Shown here one piece after another: positions 15,468-23,757 of a stretch of 64,000 bases of DNA. This stretch comes from Utricularia gibba (lineage: Eukaryota; Plantae; Magnoliophyta). The notes under the pieces are model-generated. The model had not been told where the DNA came from and made no database searches. It saw only the letters and a program-made list of their open reading frames with translations. The position numbers and the translations under genes are program-made. Each line of letters starts with the position of its first letter. Positions within the stretch are counted from its first letter, which is position 1. The stretch is from NCBI GenBank assembly GCA_002189035.1, contig NEEC01000015.1:62001-126000 (forward strand). The letters run 5' to 3'.

Positions 15468-15500
15468 GGCACCGGCACCGGCACCGGCACCGGCACCGGC
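15468..15500. repeat. (GGCACC)5.5 hexamer tandem repeat upstream of the MADS-box gene
   Basis: Five perfect GGCACC units plus GGC, read directly. Confidence 0.9.
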
Positions 15501-15758
15501 TGGTGGGTGATGTGTGCGGAAGGCCCACATCAATCCGGGAAGGTGCAACGGTTGATTCCCAACGACTAGCCTCTGGGTACTCATCGCAATCCACAGACTC
15601 ACGAGAAGACCGGATCACTGCTCCGGTATTAAAAAAAGCACAAGTTGGATTGGAATTTAAAATTCATAATTACATACGTGGGAATGGTACGGTGACGCAT
15701 GAACAACACAGAAGGTGTATAAATAAGGTTGGAGGCGCCCCAAATCAGACGACACAAG

Positions 15759-18715
15759 ATGGGGAGAGGGAGAGTTGAGCTGAAGAGAATCGAAAACAAG
15801 ATCAACAGGCAGGTCACTTTCGCCAAACGGAGGGCTGGGCTTTGGAAGAAAGCTCGCGAGCTTTCCGTTCTTTGCGACGCCGAGATTGTAATGATCGTCT
15901 TCTCCAGTAGGGGGAAGCTCTACGACTTCTGCAGTAGCTCTAGGTATCAAAACCACACCACACATCACACCGCCTCTCTTCCTTGCTTTCTTTACTCGCT
16001 TACTTTCACTCATGGTTCCATAGATTTGTGGCTTGTTTGGCCCCAAAAAAGACACAAAAGCAGTTTTATCTCTTCTTGCCGTTTCTGTGATGGTTATGGG
16101 GCTCTGTGCTTGTGGGTTTGCCAAGATCCGCCACTCCAAAAAACCGCCACCGTATACCTTCAACGCTACCTTTCTCTTCCTTCTTTCTTTTGTCTCTTCA
16201 TCGTAAATCTCTGTTTTTGGAGATACAACATCCCATAACTACCAACAAAACACCTAACGGGCCAACGGCTGATCTTCTTTCTTCCCTTGTTCGTTGAGGA
16301 GAAGTAATGGCACAGTGCAATAGAATGAAAAACAGGCTTCCTAGGGTTTTCCCCACGTTTTCTTCATGGCAGAATCCCAAGTTTCAAGGGACATGCCCCA
16401 CCCCTTTTTTCAGACCTTGGTTTCCATATCTTTTTCAGCTTCGTCATCGGCTTCAAGTTACCCTAGGGAGTCCAGACTCTTCTCTCTCAGTTTTCTTCTT
16501 CTTTTCTTTTATTTTTCTTGGATTGCGCTGCAATTAGGGCTTCGTGTGGGAGGATGAACATCATCAGCATCTACTAAATTTTTGCGAGAAATTCTCTCTA
16601 TAATAAATGCCTTTTCGTGGGATTTAGCCCTAGGTTTTGGTTTGGGGATTGTGAATTGTTGCAGATAATCCTTTTTTTTTTTCGTTTGCGTCAGTCTTGT
16701 GTGTCAAGAATATTTTTTAATGATGGGTTTTCAGGCCAGTCTCTTAATCCAAGATCTTTTAAAGCTTCAAATAATTATTTGTGTAGTCACTGACAATCTG
16801 CAACAAACTTACCGTTGGGCAACGTTTAGGATGCGCAAATGCATGAATTACACTACGATTCCTCGATTTATCTCACGGAAATTTAGGAAGCTCGTCCATT
16901 ACAGACTCATGTTTATCTGTTCACGCAGCCTTTTTTTCCCGTCCGAACTGGTGACTGGGCAAGCTAGATTCCTTCTAACTCGTAGTAATCAATGTTTCTG
17001 GATTATACTTTTGTTTATTGCTTTTGCCTGAATCTCTCAGCACCATGCTCGAGACACTGGAAAAGTATCAGAATTCAAATTATGGACCACCAGAGACAAA
17101 TGTTTCCACCAGGGAGGCACTGGTAACCGTCACACATTCTTCTATGATTATTGCTTTTATTTTTTCATTTATCTGTTTACTGGCCCTAAAACTCTTGAAT
17201 TCCTTGCTTGGTTGATATTTATTATTGTCTAACAAGAAAGTAGTCTATAACCACAAGGGTGCTAATGTAGGTTTTTGTAATATTGCTTAAAACTTTCTTG
17301 GGGGCTAATATTTAGAACAAACAACACCAAAGTATTAAATAAAAATATTACCTTTCAGTTCAAAAATACTTTGTTTGATGCATGTCGAATGTATACAGTC
17401 CTACAGCTCTTCGTGGCTGAAATCATGCTTGCTCTTCCCTTTTCCGTTGATGCAAGATGAAAATGAAGATCACAATATATGTATAAGGAAGAGGTTTTTG
17501 TAATTTTTGTATGAGCTGTTCTCATTTGCTTTTATGTCAAATTTAGTGAAATAACTGTGAATAAAACGTTTGTTGACCCCCACAAAATATAGAATGTTTA
17601 TGTGGCAGAAGTTCCATTCGCTTTATTACTACATAGCCAATTATGTCTGAGCTTTTGAGGATTTCACCTGTGGATGTGATGACTAAGCATGTTTTCATTG
17701 TAAAATATTGATTCAGGAACTGAGTAGCCAGCAGGAGTATTTGAAGCTTAAAGCACGCTATGAAGCTCTGCAGAGAACTCAAAGGTTTTGTGCTTCTGTT
17801 GGGTTGTTTGTGATTCTACATTACAGTTACACCAAGATTTTTGCATTCATTTATTAAAGATAATATCGTGTTCTTGTTAAGGTACCAGGAATCATACACG
17901 GGTGATACGTGTAGCTGATTTTATTGCATTCTCAGGAACCTTCTTGGTGAGGATCTTGGCCCCTTGAACAGCAAGGAGCTCGAGTCACTAGAGAGACAAC
18001 TTGATGCATCACTGAAGCATATCAGATCAACTCGGGTTGGTACTGTTTATCTTGTGTTTGTCCCCGTGCTAATCGATTTTTTCCGAGGTTTTGGTTTGGA
18101 GTTACGCATAAATTTAACTTCTCGCAACAAAGTTCGAAGCTCATAAGAAGGTTTTTGTCAACACATTTGAGATTGCCTGCCATTTTTTTTCAGACTCAGG
18201 CAATGCTTGATACACTCGCAGACCTTCAGAGAAAGGTATCGTGAATCAGGGTTTCAAGTTCGTGCTATTTCAGCTAAGTATAACTTGTGTTTATATTGTG
18301 TTTATGATAAGGAGCACGCTCTCAATGAAGCTAACAAGAACTTGAAGCAGAGGGTAAAACATATTGGATATTTGGTGTATACCTGAATCGTCAGTGTTTT
18401 TCCCTCATGACTTGAAATAAAAAGAATTTTTCAATGGCTTTGCAGCTGATGGAAGGATGCCAGATAAGCCTTCAGTGGGATTCGAGTGCTTGCGATGTCG
18501 CTTACGGAGGGCAACCCCACCACCAGGCTCAGCCGGACGTATTCCTTCATCCTCTCGACTGTGAGCCGACACTGCAAATCGGGTAACATAACAAGCAGGC
18601 ATCCCTTCTCTTCCACACTGATTTCAAGCTTTTCTTAGTCTGTTTTGTGCTCAGTTACCAGAATGATCACCTAGCAGTTGCAGCTGGTCCTACCATGACA
18701 AGCTGGATGCTGTGA
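15759..18715 (+). CDS. SEP3: MIKC MADS-box transcription factor, SEPALLATA3 clade
   Basis: Eight exons: 15759-15943, 17041-17122, 17717-17784, 17936-18035, 18194-18235, 18312-18353, 18446-18582, 18655-18715. K-box [46 protein letters not shown] and SEP-I motif [15 protein letters not shown]. Confidence 0.93.
16342..16349 (-). promoter_or_regulatory. Telobox (AAACCCTA) in SEP3 intron 1
   Basis: TAGGGTTT on the plus strand, with related CTAGGG/TTAGGG motifs nearby at about 16460-16540. Confidence 0.4.
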
Positions 18716-18974: not shown

Positions 18975-20981
18975 TCAAGGCATTGCAGCCAAAGAAGGTT
19001 CAAAGGCAGTGGAATAAAGGAGGAGCTGCCTCCGCTTAGCCTCCGGCCGGACAAAGCTAGGGGCTTTTACCCATTCACGAGTCTTTGCATCATAGGTGAC
19101 CAACCAGTTCATCTGCCGTGATCGCAGCGAAAGCATGAGCAAGCCTTTGTTCCCAAGGCAACCCATTCTAACATGCTTCCCATAAAACTCCCAGCACCAC
19201 AACCTTGGCATTCTGTCAACCTCCTTCCACAGCAAAGTCATCTTCTGCAGCTCCCATATGTAGATGCAACTTGCCGCGTTTCTTGTCAGCAACCCTACGA
19301 GGATGATCCTACTGCCGCAGACAGCAAGGATCTGATCACTCAAATGTTGAGGTGCAGGTATGGCAAACTGTTTCCAAATCCCATTTTCCACATCGTAGGA
19401 CAAAATTCCATCAGGATTATGACGCATAAAATAAACAGTTTTTTTGATACAAACTGCTTGCGACCTGCGATTTAGTGTAAGCGGAAGGCATGCAGATGGC
19501 AACTTTCCACGGCCAACCCAAGAGTTGTTAATGGAGTCATAGATCCCGTAATCCCCACTACGGAAAACCAATACGATCTTGTAACCCAACTGGGCAGATT
19601 GAGCGTTAAGAGTCATCCCAACAGATACCCGTGGCATGACTCCAACAGACAGAGGAGGCAGCTCCTTGTGTGACCGAGTTAAAGGGTTGCAAACGTAGAA
19701 AGCTCTCTCTCCAGTTTCAAGGAAGCAGATGAGCCCGCCTGCTGAAGCCACAGGCATAACTCTTTTTTTCGGCAGGAGCCCTGGTGTTGGATGGTACCAC
19801 CTCTTCGAGGAAGGATCATAAATCGACCCCATGTTTCCCTTTGTATGACTGATGGTGTAGAACCAAGTTTGAGATTGCTTCTTATGAGCACATTCTTGTG
19901 AAAAACTTGGAGAATTCAGCAACATGTTCCATTTCTGGCAGACTAATCGGAACCGGAAAAATGCATCTACAGGAAGCCTTGCTATTACGGCTTCAAAGAG
20001 GTCTTCAGGAAATTCTTTCCAGATATTCTCATCCATGATTTCAGACGAGCTTCCAGACAACAAATTATATGCACGGCTACACTCTTTTCGAGTTCTCTTA
20101 GTAGGAGGCTTACAGGGTTCCACAATTCTCATATTTTCAGAGCTTCCTACAGTCATTAAAAGATTACGGCAGCTGTATTTGAATATGCTAACTCCTTTAT
20201 CGTAGATGCCCCAACTGCAAAAAAGTGGAAATAGATTTCAAACGTTTGGGAAGAATAAGAAGCCATGCGTTGAAAATAACCATCGCGAGAGGGAGGAATC
20301 ACACTAAGATCGAAGCCATACATGGAAAAATAACAGATCCTCCACAAAATGATGACCAGAGAAGTAGAATTTTCACACAGACAACACAAATCCTACAACT
20401 GAAAGCGGCTGTGATGGAAACGCAATGACCATTGCCAAAAAAAAGTTACCGATTCAGTGATTATTTTCTAGACAGAAACAACGAGACACTATCATATCCA
20501 GAAGATCAAAAGTACATATCGTCTGGCTTGACCATGAAAGTAGAGACGGAAAACGGTTGATGGGGCACTAACACAATGATTAAGCCTCACTGGGACCATG
20601 CCGATGAGGTCGCTCAACAACATCGGAAAAAAGAACCATCCTTCCGTCAACGGTTCATTATAGTTCACTTTTTGCAGAAAGGGGCGACACTCGATGTTAC
20701 CAAATCGAAAGCAACTCAGAACCTAGTGTAAACGATACAAAGCAACACTTCAATTCAACACAAGAAGAAAAAAAAATCATTTTTCCCCATGGAAGGGGTC
20801 CAAAAAACGTGGAGGGAATCATTTTTCCCCCATTGATGAAGCAAATTACCCACCTGACGGAGCGTTCCCCCGAAGTGGGTTGCCTTGGAGCTTCAAGGCC
20901 ATTGAGGAAATCGAAAGAAGGCGCAGCTGAAGAACCATAAACCTCCAAAACCTCGTCCAATTCGCGGAAACGCTGCCCCAT
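18975..20981 (-). CDS. LCR: F-box protein LEAF CURLING RESPONSIVENESS (FBX6-like)
   Basis: Exon 1 at 20981-20854 (MGQRFRELDEVLEVYGS..) and exon 2 at 20214-18975 in frame. F-box IWKEFPEDLFEAVIARLP and C-terminal IWELQKMTLLWKEVDRMP..LSLRSRQMN, typical of LCR. Confidence 0.92.
19205..19224 (-). promoter_or_regulatory. miR394 target site in the LCR mRNA
   Basis: The mRNA reads GGAGGTTGACAGAATGCCAA, complementary to miR394 (UUGGCAUUCUGUCCACCUCC) with one mismatch. Confidence 0.9.
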
Positions 20982-21170
20982 GAACAATCCGCCTTCAGCA
21001 GTCTTCCCCTTGTCCCTGTAGACAACTCGCAACCCAGAAGGGGGGGTTTCTTAAATTTTTTTTTAAAAAAACCAAGAGACCGAAAAGCGGGGTTTGCATT
21101 TGAAGCAGTGGGATTAGTACACACGTCACACGTAGCGGCGTCCCTCAAATCAAACCCCCAATGACCGACC

Positions 21171-21662
21171 ATGCTATGCATGTCCCCTCCGGCTCTGAAC
21201 ATCTGCTATTCTGGGCTCCGGTTAGTCTTAATATTACCCGATCGAGGAATTTTTGTTGTCAAGTGTACTTCGACAGGTTTGTACCCCTAAAAAAGTTACT
21301 GAGACCATAAAAAGTATTACGCTGGTTGAAAAACAGGTTGTAAGGGATCTTTCATCACTTCTCCTCCGCATAGGGAAGCAGCTACAGAGTACAGTCGTGC
21401 TCTCTCTCTTCTGTCAATAAGCAACTCCCGGGGTTCATGCGGACTGCCTCCTATTCATTGCCAAGGAATCATCCTCCCTCTCATTACAGAGCCGCCGGTG
21501 ACCCCGACCTACGGACTGGCCGAAGAAGGCTTGCCGGATATTTTTGTTTCAGAGAATCATCATTCATCAGCACAAGCACCACGTGAAGCTCAGGATTAGG
21601 AAAGCAGCAGCCGGATGCTGAGGGCACCTTATGAGCCCAAGCTGGGGTTTCTACTAACATAG
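21171..21662 (+). pseudogene. SPL2/10/11-clade remnant lacking the SBP domain (last two exons only)
   Basis: Putative exon 21171-21276, a 60-nt GT-AG intron, then an exon from 21337: GCKGSFITSPPHREAATEYSRALSLLSISNSRGSC..AQD* (TAG 21597-21599), followed in frame by ESSSRMLRAPYEPKLGF. No SBP zinc-finger sequence is visible upstream. Confidence 0.78.
21397..21416 (+). promoter_or_regulatory. miR156/157 target site
   Basis: GTGCTCTCTCTCTTCTGTCA, identical to the canonical SPL miR156 response element and in the RALSLLS frame. Confidence 0.9.
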
Positions 21663-22039
21663 TCCCCAAAGAACTGATAAAACCAGTTCCCAGTTTGTAA
21701 TTTTCAAAATTTTTGGGTAGACTTGGCCCTGATTTCAGATTCATTTTCAATTCCTCCTGTTCTGCTTCAAGGACCACGCCATCCTTGAAGCGTGATTCTT
21801 GAAGCAACTTGGTTGGTGCTACTAGTCACTCTTGTCTACGTTTGAAACAAACACCTTTGTGAATTCTATCACGCTGAAAAATGGGCAGATTCCACTCGAA
21901 CTCAGATTCATGCCATGAGTGTGCGCACTGGCTAAGATTCATTTCTTAATTTATCACAGCTACGCAAATACCTACACGGATTACAGGAGAAAAAAGGGAA
22001 AATGAGAGGACAGCAAACAATTCTTAAGGAATCCAATGG

Positions 22040-23491
22040 TTACAAAAAGTATTTCATCCTATCGTCTCTTCTCATAGCGTTGTACACAGCCTGCACCTGA
22101 AAAATGAGCATAAATCATTCATTTAACAGCCACAGAGGAAGCACCTAAAATGCACCAACAGATCCAATGCTGAAAATTCTTATAGCTCCTTCAGTGTAGT
22201 TTAATTTGGTTTAGTTTCATCCAGTAACTAATACATCCTGGAGAACGAGAGCTCACCTGCTCACTGGAAACAACTCGAACCGGCCCAATGTTTACAGAGA
22301 CATACTTTCCCCCAGAAGAGATCTTTTGTTTCACTTTACCCTGTTGAGAAAACAAACCAGGCATCACACTCCCAGATATGCATCATCACATCAATATTGA
22401 CACTCCCAGATATGGTTTTGTGGGGATCCAGAGAGAGATATCGATCGTTCACTGATAAGGGTAAGACAAATGTTGGATTCCAAAAAGAACATCTGCATGA
22501 GGAGGAAGGCCGTGGGTGTTTGCCTTGAACTATCGAGGGGTTGTACAGCATCCAGGACTTAGTCATGTGATGTGGTACGATACAACTTAAAAGTTCTGTA
22601 GGACTTCGACTATGCTTACCTCCGGGATCTGGTATTGGAGTACTGATTCCACAGCAATGACCATGGCCTGTACAAAATCATCACCCCCTGTTCCAATAGC
22701 TGTAAATCTTCTGGCCGTCGGGTATGAGTTCACCTGTGAAACATGAAAAACATATTATCAAGCGATCATCCTAAGTTTGTGGCAAGCAGCAGTGATTAGG
22801 CTAAATGCCAATCTCTTAGACATGGGGGATCACAATCCTCGAATAGTCATCTAATAACAATGAAGATTTTCACTTTCAGGATACCTTCTGATCAAGAGTA
22901 AGCCACTCATTGTTTGCATCATCCGTAACCGTACCGCCTATAACTACATTTGTGGTTTGCCCCACTCTGCCTTCCGTCCTTGAAAGCTCTAGAAACAAGA
23001 ATCAAACATTAAGGGATGCTTTCGCCATCCCTCCGAAACATAGATATACAAAACCACCAACCAAATTGCGTAAGTGCAAGTGCTTTAAGTAAGCGGCTTT
23101 GCAGTGTCAACCGAACAATGTACAATGAAGAATAATTGACAAAAGTACATAGAATTAATGGTATTTTCATGAAAAGAGATCAATAAATACGACATGGAAA
23201 CGAAAATACTTCAAACTATATACCAGATATTGCCTTCAAAACGGCTTCCTGGGGCGGTCCATGCTCAGAGTCATCATCGAAGGGCAAGTAGGGGTTCTCA
23301 GTTTCGGAGCAATTTCTTCCAAGACGATAACTTTTGGCGTTAACCGACATTTGACACCCACAAATTGCACTAGATTTCGATACGTTCTTGCGATAGGAAA
23401 CAACGGGAGTCAGATAGCACGGTTTCTTGTTCATCAAAGGCAAAAGCATCCATGGCTCAGCTAAGAAAGTCCCCGTAGTTGTGCTGACCAT
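22040..23491 (-). CDS. DUF493/YbeD(HP0495)-like protein (At1g27385-like), probable plastid transit peptide
   Basis: Exons 23491-23224, 22988-22885, 22733-22620, 22340-22257, 22096-22040: PPQEAVLKAISELSRTEGRVGQTTNVVIGGTV..VNSYPTARRFTAIGTGGDDFVQAM..SSGGKYVSVNIGPVRVVSSEQVQAVYNAMRRDDRMKYFL*. Confidence 0.9.
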
Positions 23492-23757
23492 TTTCCCAAT
23501 CACCGAGGAAAATCGCTTTAGAGTTCTCGTTCAATTGGGATTTGCTGTGAATTTTATTGTCAGGATTATATGGTCTGCCGTTTTCCAGCCGTTCATCAAA
23601 CGGAACCGAAGAGCAGTTTGATTTGAGCACACCTGGCTTTACTATTGCCAGAACGCTATTCGAGGAAAGGACGATTCTGTCCTTGTGACCGAGACAAAGG
23701 TGTAGCGGCGTATTCGTAAGCTGCGAAACACAGCTTCTTCTCCTCCGATCATCGTGT

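Follow-up and report, generated by a model that had tools for sequence, protein, structure and literature searches.

The locus described here lies in a 64-kb window (the whole stretch of Utricularia gibba DNA that was analyzed) between two genes of the minus strand, an F-box/Kelch gene and a gene encoding a DUF493 protein. The former contains an ORF of 393 residues (18975-20156) with the F-box and Kelch domains assigned by Pfam. Its closest relatives are proteins named 'F-box only protein 6', with 57-66% identity and Lamiales leading (60-66% to other Lamiales), and an exact-protein look-up of the ORF gave no match on record. The second exon carries a miR394 site, GGAGGTTGACAGAATGCCAA, which departs from the perfect complement at one position. 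As AT1G27340 is the Kelch protein listed as a target of miR394 (PMC3981707), the domains and the site identify the gene as LCR; the first-pass annotation had proposed such a miR394-target neighbour on the minus strand, and spliced RNA contigs also bear it out. These contigs come from three RNA-like contig runs (X6, X7, and X8), and their CT..AC joints correspond to GT..AG introns of the minus strand; in LCR, the intron spans 20215-20853 and separates the two exons given in Table 1.

The DUF493 gene was likewise delineated by RNA contigs. Its exons at 23224-23546, 22883-22988, 22619-22731, and 22254-22339 precede the last exon listed in Table 1, and its 3' end is near 21885. This leaves an interval without a known transcript of about 822 bp (21063-21884) between LCR and the DUF493 gene, ∼40% of which is taken up by the SPL-like exon that is the subject of this study. 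Two close ACGT-core motifs, cacacgtcacacgtag, are found at 21120-21137, ∼60-75 bp upstream of the furthest end of an LCR RNA contig; judging by their sequence, it is possible that they are G-box/ABRE-type elements of the LCR promoter. On the other side of LCR, positions 15729-18600 of the plus strand are occupied by a MADS-box gene that has an SRF-TF domain (E 1e-23) and, farther along, exons resembling a K-box; it is arranged tail-to-tail with LCR.

Table 1. Coordinates of the features at the locus (window positions) and the evidence for each
Feature	Position	Strand	Evidence
LCR exon 2 (F-box/Kelch), with the miR394 site at 19205-19224	18975..20214	-	Domains, site match
LCR exon 1 (ATG at 20981), 5' UTR to at least 21062	20854..21062	-	Spliced RNA contigs, CT..AC joint 20214/20854
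Hypothetical first exon with ATG, within the likely LCR promoter	21171..21276	+	No homologue, no Pfam match, zero depth
Putative 60-nt GT-AG intron	21277..21336	+	Sequence; match of the 17-mer starts at 21334; no RNA joint
Relic of the last exon of a group V (SPL2/10/11-type) gene, 108 codons including the internal stop and the terminal TAG	21337..21662	+	SbSPL1 collinearity, probes
Canonical miR156/157 target site, without central bulge	21397..21416	+	Exact, unique; sequence and frame shared with the SPL sites of Arabidopsis (PMC3727082)
15-nt GSCG block, identical to SbSPL1 CDS; control for non-miRNA preservation	21430..21444	+	Exact, unique
Premature in-frame TAG	21597..21599	+	Frame reading, SbSPL1/SbSPL3 comparison
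DUF493 gene, last exon and 3' UTR (stop at 22040-22042), convergent	21885..22093	-	RNA contigs, Pfam

The miR156 site and its reading frame

The miR156 site, the 20-mer GTGCTCTCTCTCTTCTGTCA, occurs without a mismatch and as a single copy in the window; in shuffled sequences, the chance rate for a miR156 20-mer with up to three mismatches was 0.01 per window. In the frame 21171+3k, the site reads R-A-L-S-L-L-S, with the peptide context EAATEYSRALSLLSISNSRGSCG. The miR156-targeted Arabidopsis SPL genes, such as AT1G27360 (SPL11) and AT1G27370 (SPL10), have xGU GCU CUC UCU CUU CUG UCA at this place, translated as x-A-L-S-L-L-S (PMC3727082). The site in the window equals the Arabidopsis sites in both sequence and frame, and agrees with the published definition of an SPL site as GUGCUCUCUCUCUUCUGUCA read as ALSLLS (PMC3727082). 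Hence, the canonical element in the RALSLLS frame, reported in the first-pass annotation, is there as described, and the AGI numbers that the annotation gave for LCR, SPL11, and SPL10 agree with the literature (PMC3727082, PMC3981707). Pairing with miR156 is continuous through positions 10-11 of the miRNA; against miR156a, the site has a single mismatch, opposite position 14. To our knowledge, this mismatch is common to every SPL target.

The frame bearing the site is open at 21330-21596 only, which amounts to 89 residues without a single Met codon, and is directly preceded by TGA at 21327-21329. Since the open frame has no ATG and starts right after a stop, the fragment cannot be translated alone. 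The in-frame TAG that closes the frame is followed by ESSSRMLRAPYEPKLGFLLT, which includes RMLRAPYEPKLGFLLT, and then by the second TAG at 21660-21662.

Homology to the C-terminus of group V SPL proteins

For comparison, we used the 14 SPL proteins and CDSs of Scutellaria baicalensis (Lamiales) printed in the supplement of PMC10873456; SbSPL1 is the only group V member among them. Aligned by eye, the segment 21337-21662 is collinear in one frame with the C-terminal 108 codons of SbSPL1, from the first G to the stop codon in both. We take group V to be the SPL2/10/11 type, in line with the usual grouping of AtSPL. The end of SbSPL1 reads ...GSKGSQLSFHLDAAAPEYRRALSLLSSNVWGSCGPES...HGIPEGVPLSS...HQSTHPHAP...ITPNETDLYPDILN, and its counterpart in the window is GCKGSFITSPPHREAATEYSRALSLLSISNSRGSCGLPP...YGLAEEGLPDIF...HHSSAQAP...*...RAPYEPK...*. 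By eye, the landmarks GxKGS, AAxEYxRALSLLS, SN, GSCG, G[IL]xEG[VL]P, and H.S...AP are common to both and retain their order, with overall amino acid identity of ∼30%. Other miR156-targeted clades differ around ALSLLS, as seen in SbSPL2 (VDSDGALSLLSSASP), SbSPL4 (SNSTTALSLLSNTNN), and SbSPL5 (GSDSSSALSLLSAQSQ).

Given that this alignment was made by eye, two probes from the SbSPL1 CDS serve as objective anchors. The 15-nt probe GGGGTTCATGCGGAC has an exact and unique match (chance 0.01) in the block encoding GSCG, which is unrelated to miR156 and is situated 14 nt downstream of the site. A 17-mer from the start of the homologous stretch of SbSPL1 matches 14/17 positions at 21334-21350 (chance 0.24, so this match is weak alone); the distance from it to the miR156 site is 63 nt in the window and 60 nt in SbSPL1, so that the two sequences are collinear but for a single codon. 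Upstream of ∼21334 (21334-21337), the resemblance to the SbSPL1 CDS falls to the background level, and therefore the AG at 21335-21336 is most simply explained as the ancestral acceptor of the last exon, which it probably marks. Thus, the SPL2/10/11-like context suggested by the annotation holds in the comparison with a Lamiales group V protein, and 21337-21662 represents, as far as the sequence can tell, the whole of the last exon from a group V SPL gene.

The motif [KR]APY[DE] is found close to the C-end of the related SbSPL3 (QLFKAPYDSGG), and in the window it follows the internal TAG. This means that the TAG is premature relative to the ancestral frame: SbSPL1 is collinear through this region, and the codon stands ∼20 codons before the ancestral stop and cuts off the APY[DE] end.

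Searches with the 89-residue peptide found no match in Pfam, among proteins of the same length, or in the ESM Atlas, and none that was significant among 1.84 billion representative proteins. This is expected, as the C-terminus is short, disordered, and fast-evolving; its homology is visible only against a specific published SPL from Lamiales. Like group V proteins (Arabidopsis SPL2, SPL10, and SPL11, and SbSPL1), the exon has the miR156 site in the ALSLLS frame, preceded by AAxEYxR and followed by GSCG, and it matches them in length, with 108 codons counted from GxKGS through the stop. Unlike these genes, the locus lacks the SBP domain, the N-terminal and middle parts, and the promoter, has the premature TAG before the APY[DE] end, and has no detected RNA.

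Absence of the SBP domain

SPL proteins are transcription factors that act in flowering time and bind DNA through the SBP domain, which consists of two zinc fingers and an NLS. Its signatures C[SAT][RK]FH, R[RK][RK]L..H[NK], and F[DE]..[KR][RK]SCR are all missing from the 64-kb window in six-frame translation, and the open frame 21330-21596 has no Pfam match. The absence of the SBP domain, originally claimed for the ∼190 bp before the LCR ATG, thus extends to the entire window. Together with the homology to SbSPL1, it supports the view, already put forward in the annotation, that the SBP-encoding 5' part of an SPL gene has been lost while the last exon with the miR156 site has been kept.

Transcription and the proposed splicing

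We found no RNA over the site in the X6, X7, and X8 runs: the depth is zero in the bins 21138-21304 and 21305-21471, although contigs cannot prove silence. In the same runs, exon 1 of LCR was assembled at a depth of 4-25 and the DUF493 gene at 20-200, and the contigs of both genes have their introns removed. Hence, the fragment is not detectably transcribed, and RNA from this locus, if any, is far below the levels of its neighbours.

The annotation also proposed a 60-nt intron and a spliced ORF beginning at ATG 21171. The GT at 21277 and the AG at 21335-21336 are both present, and the arithmetic is correct (106 + 260 nt make 122 codons in frame); still, the X6, X7, and X8 contigs contain no splice joint anywhere between 21062 and 21885, including 21276/21337, so this structure stands as a pair of borders and a frame but not as an observed transcript. 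We also considered 21176-21276 as the penultimate SPL exon, based on the patterns H.P..HL and [KR]G[FI][LF]..K noted by eye, and rejected it, as the resemblance is weak and needs several indels and a frameshift.

A faint contig at 21472-21805 was seen in X6 only, with a mean depth of 2.3 and 1.1 in its two bins and no strand information. It abuts the 3' end of the DUF493 gene and is probably a read-through from it. The same bins coincide with a minus-strand ORF of 107 codons (21484-21807) that has no Pfam match.

Preservation of the site and its flanks

According to the first-pass annotation, the miR156 site had remained unmutated while the flanking protein drifted. The comparison with SbSPL1 contradicts this, as the flanks are not decayed: the exon keeps both its frame and its length over 108 codons, its visible lesions are limited to one nonsense codon with no frameshift, and the GSCG block, which is not part of the miR156 site, is as intact as the site itself. 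The ∼30% identity to SbSPL1 fits the fast protein evolution of the U. gibba genome, where even LCR is 60-66% identical to its Lamiales relatives, and the divergence could have built up while the SPL gene still worked.

In a neutral simulation, in which 106 sense codons received substitutions biased towards transitions and indels were assumed at 0.1 per substitution, the combination of one stop and no frameshift was likeliest at 2-3% divergence. The probability that a 20-nt site stays untouched was 0.54-0.67 at this divergence and 0.36 at 5%. As a 20-mer is likely to survive neutral decay of 2-3%, the intact site needs no selection. The proposal that the RNA is under selection as a competing miR156 target therefore finds no support, given also the lack of RNA contigs and joints, the cleavable site, and the absence of excess preservation.

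Origin of the fragment and alternative explanations

We consider it likely that the locus is what deletion has left of a group V SPL gene of the SPL2/10/11 type, and that this fragment is non-functional and evolutionarily young. Like other pseudogene fragments, it is homologous to a part of the parent gene with essential parts missing, and carries a disabling stop, the TAG at 21597-21599. One or more deletions would have removed the promoter, the exons encoding the SBP domain, and the middle of the gene. The last exon, perhaps with a part of the last intron, would have survived on the upstream side of LCR, at a distance of ∼275 bp from its transcription start and of ∼220 bp from the DUF493 3' end, and the miR156 site would be intact owing to the little time elapsed since the loss of constraint rather than to use. 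Several observations weigh on the other side. Low or tissue-specific transcription may occur, as contigs show presence and not absence; X6 has its faint contig (depth 1-2) over 21472-21805; the kept frame and length could reflect constraint instead of youth; the alignment to SbSPL1 was made by eye; and the 89-residue peptide has no significant match among 1.84 billion proteins.

Among the alternatives, an intact SPL gene, with SBP exons hidden by an assembly error or situated far upstream so that LCR is nested in an intron, is highly improbable: the window is free of Ns, an SBP motif is missing from both its strands, DNA runs from two studies contain 97%, 88%, and 69% of the sampled 31-mers from 20700-22300, and no RNA joint enters 21337. 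The first three of these observations by themselves make a hidden SBP exon unlikely. Even less credible is an SBP-less C-terminal SPL protein of ∼122 residues, started at ATG 21171 and produced by the 21276/21337 splice. The in-frame arithmetic, the GT-AG borders, and the preserved frame of the exon all agree with such a protein, but there is neither RNA nor a splice joint, both pieces lack Pfam matches and homologues, the proposed first exon falls inside the LCR promoter, and the premature TAG removes the conserved end. Finally, a MIR156 gene on the minus strand deserves almost no credence. The reverse complement of the site, UGACAGAAGAGAGAGAGCAC, is a miR156j-type mature sequence with a 100% match in Table 2 of PMC3727082, but the locus forms no hairpin (fold z-scores of +0.74 for the minus strand and +1.52 for the plus strand) and has no Rfam match to mir-156, which refutes a MIR156 precursor on either strand.

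Other explanations assign a function to the RNA or to the DNA as such. The fragment might be transcribed from a bidirectional LCR promoter and act as a decoy, either titrating miR156 off SPL mRNAs or being sliced to give rise to siRNAs. To work in this way, a decoy RNA has to be abundant. The site is indeed perfect, miR156 ranks with the most abundant miRNAs in U. gibba, being one of the five families that make 94% of its miRNA reads (PMC8333044), the genome has short bidirectional promoters (PMC4972453), and there is the faint X6 signal at 21472-21805. Against this, in the three runs in which LCR was assembled at a depth of 6-25, no RNA contig covers the site and no splice joint is seen; the site is preserved no better than the adjacent 15-mer, within the neutral expectation. 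In addition, plant target mimics of the IPS1 type block slicing and trap the miRNA by a central bulge or poor pairing at the cleavage position (PMC6162444), and the site at 21397-21416 has no bulge or mismatch opposite miRNA positions 10-11; therefore, an RNA from this locus would be cut rather than sequester miR156. The locus does resemble endogenous target mimics (IPS1/miR399 and the predicted miR156 eTMs) in having a miR156-complementary element without coding for an SPL, but the mimics are expressed non-coding RNAs with a bulge or mismatches at positions 10-11, while here the pairing is continuous and no transcript was found. Given the abundance of miR156 in U. gibba, a rare cleavable RNA is not expected to titrate it. 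Overall, we regard the decoy as quite unlikely. Still less likely is the more specific possibility that the orphan exon is transcribed at a low level or in particular tissues from the bidirectional LCR promoter as an SBP-less substrate sliced by miR156, which would buffer miR156 or seed secondary siRNAs against the intact SPL2/10/11-type paralogues; if it were expressed and sliced, the miR394-LCR and miR156-SPL modules would be coupled at one promoter. It is also unlikely, albeit somewhat less so than the decoy, that the DNA is retained because it works within the LCR promoter or keeps LCR apart from the 3' end of the DUF493 gene, with the miR156 site as a passenger of such a cis-regulatory takeover. 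This would agree with the large share of the exon in the DNA between the end of the LCR 5' UTR (21062) and the DUF493 3' end (21885), with the ACGT-core motifs, and with the fact that the remaining intergenic DNA of U. gibba is short and often promoter-active (PMC4972453). However, a regulatory activity of 21337-21662 is unsupported, the ACGT motifs are upstream of the relic exon and not inside it, and young age accounts for its retention without any function.

Genomic context and implications

The flanks of the relic were said in the annotation to be the same as those of SPL11 and SPL10 in Arabidopsis. Both LCR and the DUF493 gene are confirmed beside it, and the Arabidopsis order is borne out in part, by the AGI numbers of LCR, SPL11, and SPL10. 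The head-to-head adjacency of LCR and SPL was not seen in the six other eudicots compared (Handroanthus, Erythranthe, Salvia, Olea, tomato, and papaya), where no SPL gene, SBP motif, or miR156 site is present within 10 kb of LCR. Downstream of LCR, RAMP4 or DnaJ genes occur in five of these six, papaya having an AMP-binding gene instead. In particular, RAMP4 takes the position of the MADS-box gene in tomato and in three of the four other Lamiales compared (not in Salvia), and there is none beside LCR in the window. Probably, the deletion or rearrangement removed more than the SPL sequence.

The Lamiales-first matches of LCR and the compact gene spacing agree with Utricularia gibba, a species whose genome was duplicated as a whole at least three times and then fractionated to an extreme degree, back to single copy, and for which a deletion bias has been proposed (PMC4972453). 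A second copy of LCR, which differs at 83 of 581 nt (∼85% identity), is seen in RNA contigs matching 19021-19986; its depth is 113 compared to ∼10 for the copy in the window, and this homoeologue seems to be the main expressed LCR. The existence of an expressed second copy means that the window locus is one member of a duplicated region, and the loss of an SPL gene by deletion from one such member is the expected process in U. gibba. We infer that the deletion took place in situ during post-polyploid gene loss and that the relic is young.

The locus is similar to the gene fragments left by fractionation in maize and U. gibba (PMC4972453), as it is a partial gene in a duplicated region of a deletion-biased genome, with intact and expressed neighbours and an expressed LCR paralogue elsewhere. 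It differs from them in that the surviving piece happens to hold a complete miRNA target site. If our reading is correct, it provides a clean, datable case of piecemeal gene loss in a genome shrinking by deletions, with the DNA-binding two-thirds of an SPL gene gone and its last exon almost untouched beside another microRNA-regulated gene. It also calls for caution in genome scans: when a gene fragment retains an intact miRNA site, this counts as evidence of a decoy only if the remainder of the fragment is visibly decayed. If RNA from the fragment were made and sliced, plants would have here one of the rare natural competitors for miR156 derived from a pseudogene; nothing that we found points there.

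Two repeats were noted near these genes. An inverted repeat at 21763-21806, just beyond the 3' end of the DUF493 gene, has 17-nt arms that are 88% complementary and a 10-nt loop; its match to mir-8186 in Rfam is non-significant (E 0.93). The other is a short (TG)n/(CA)n microsatellite at 15470-15500, which precedes the MADS-box gene and appears in the ORF lists as RHRHRH/GTGTGT.
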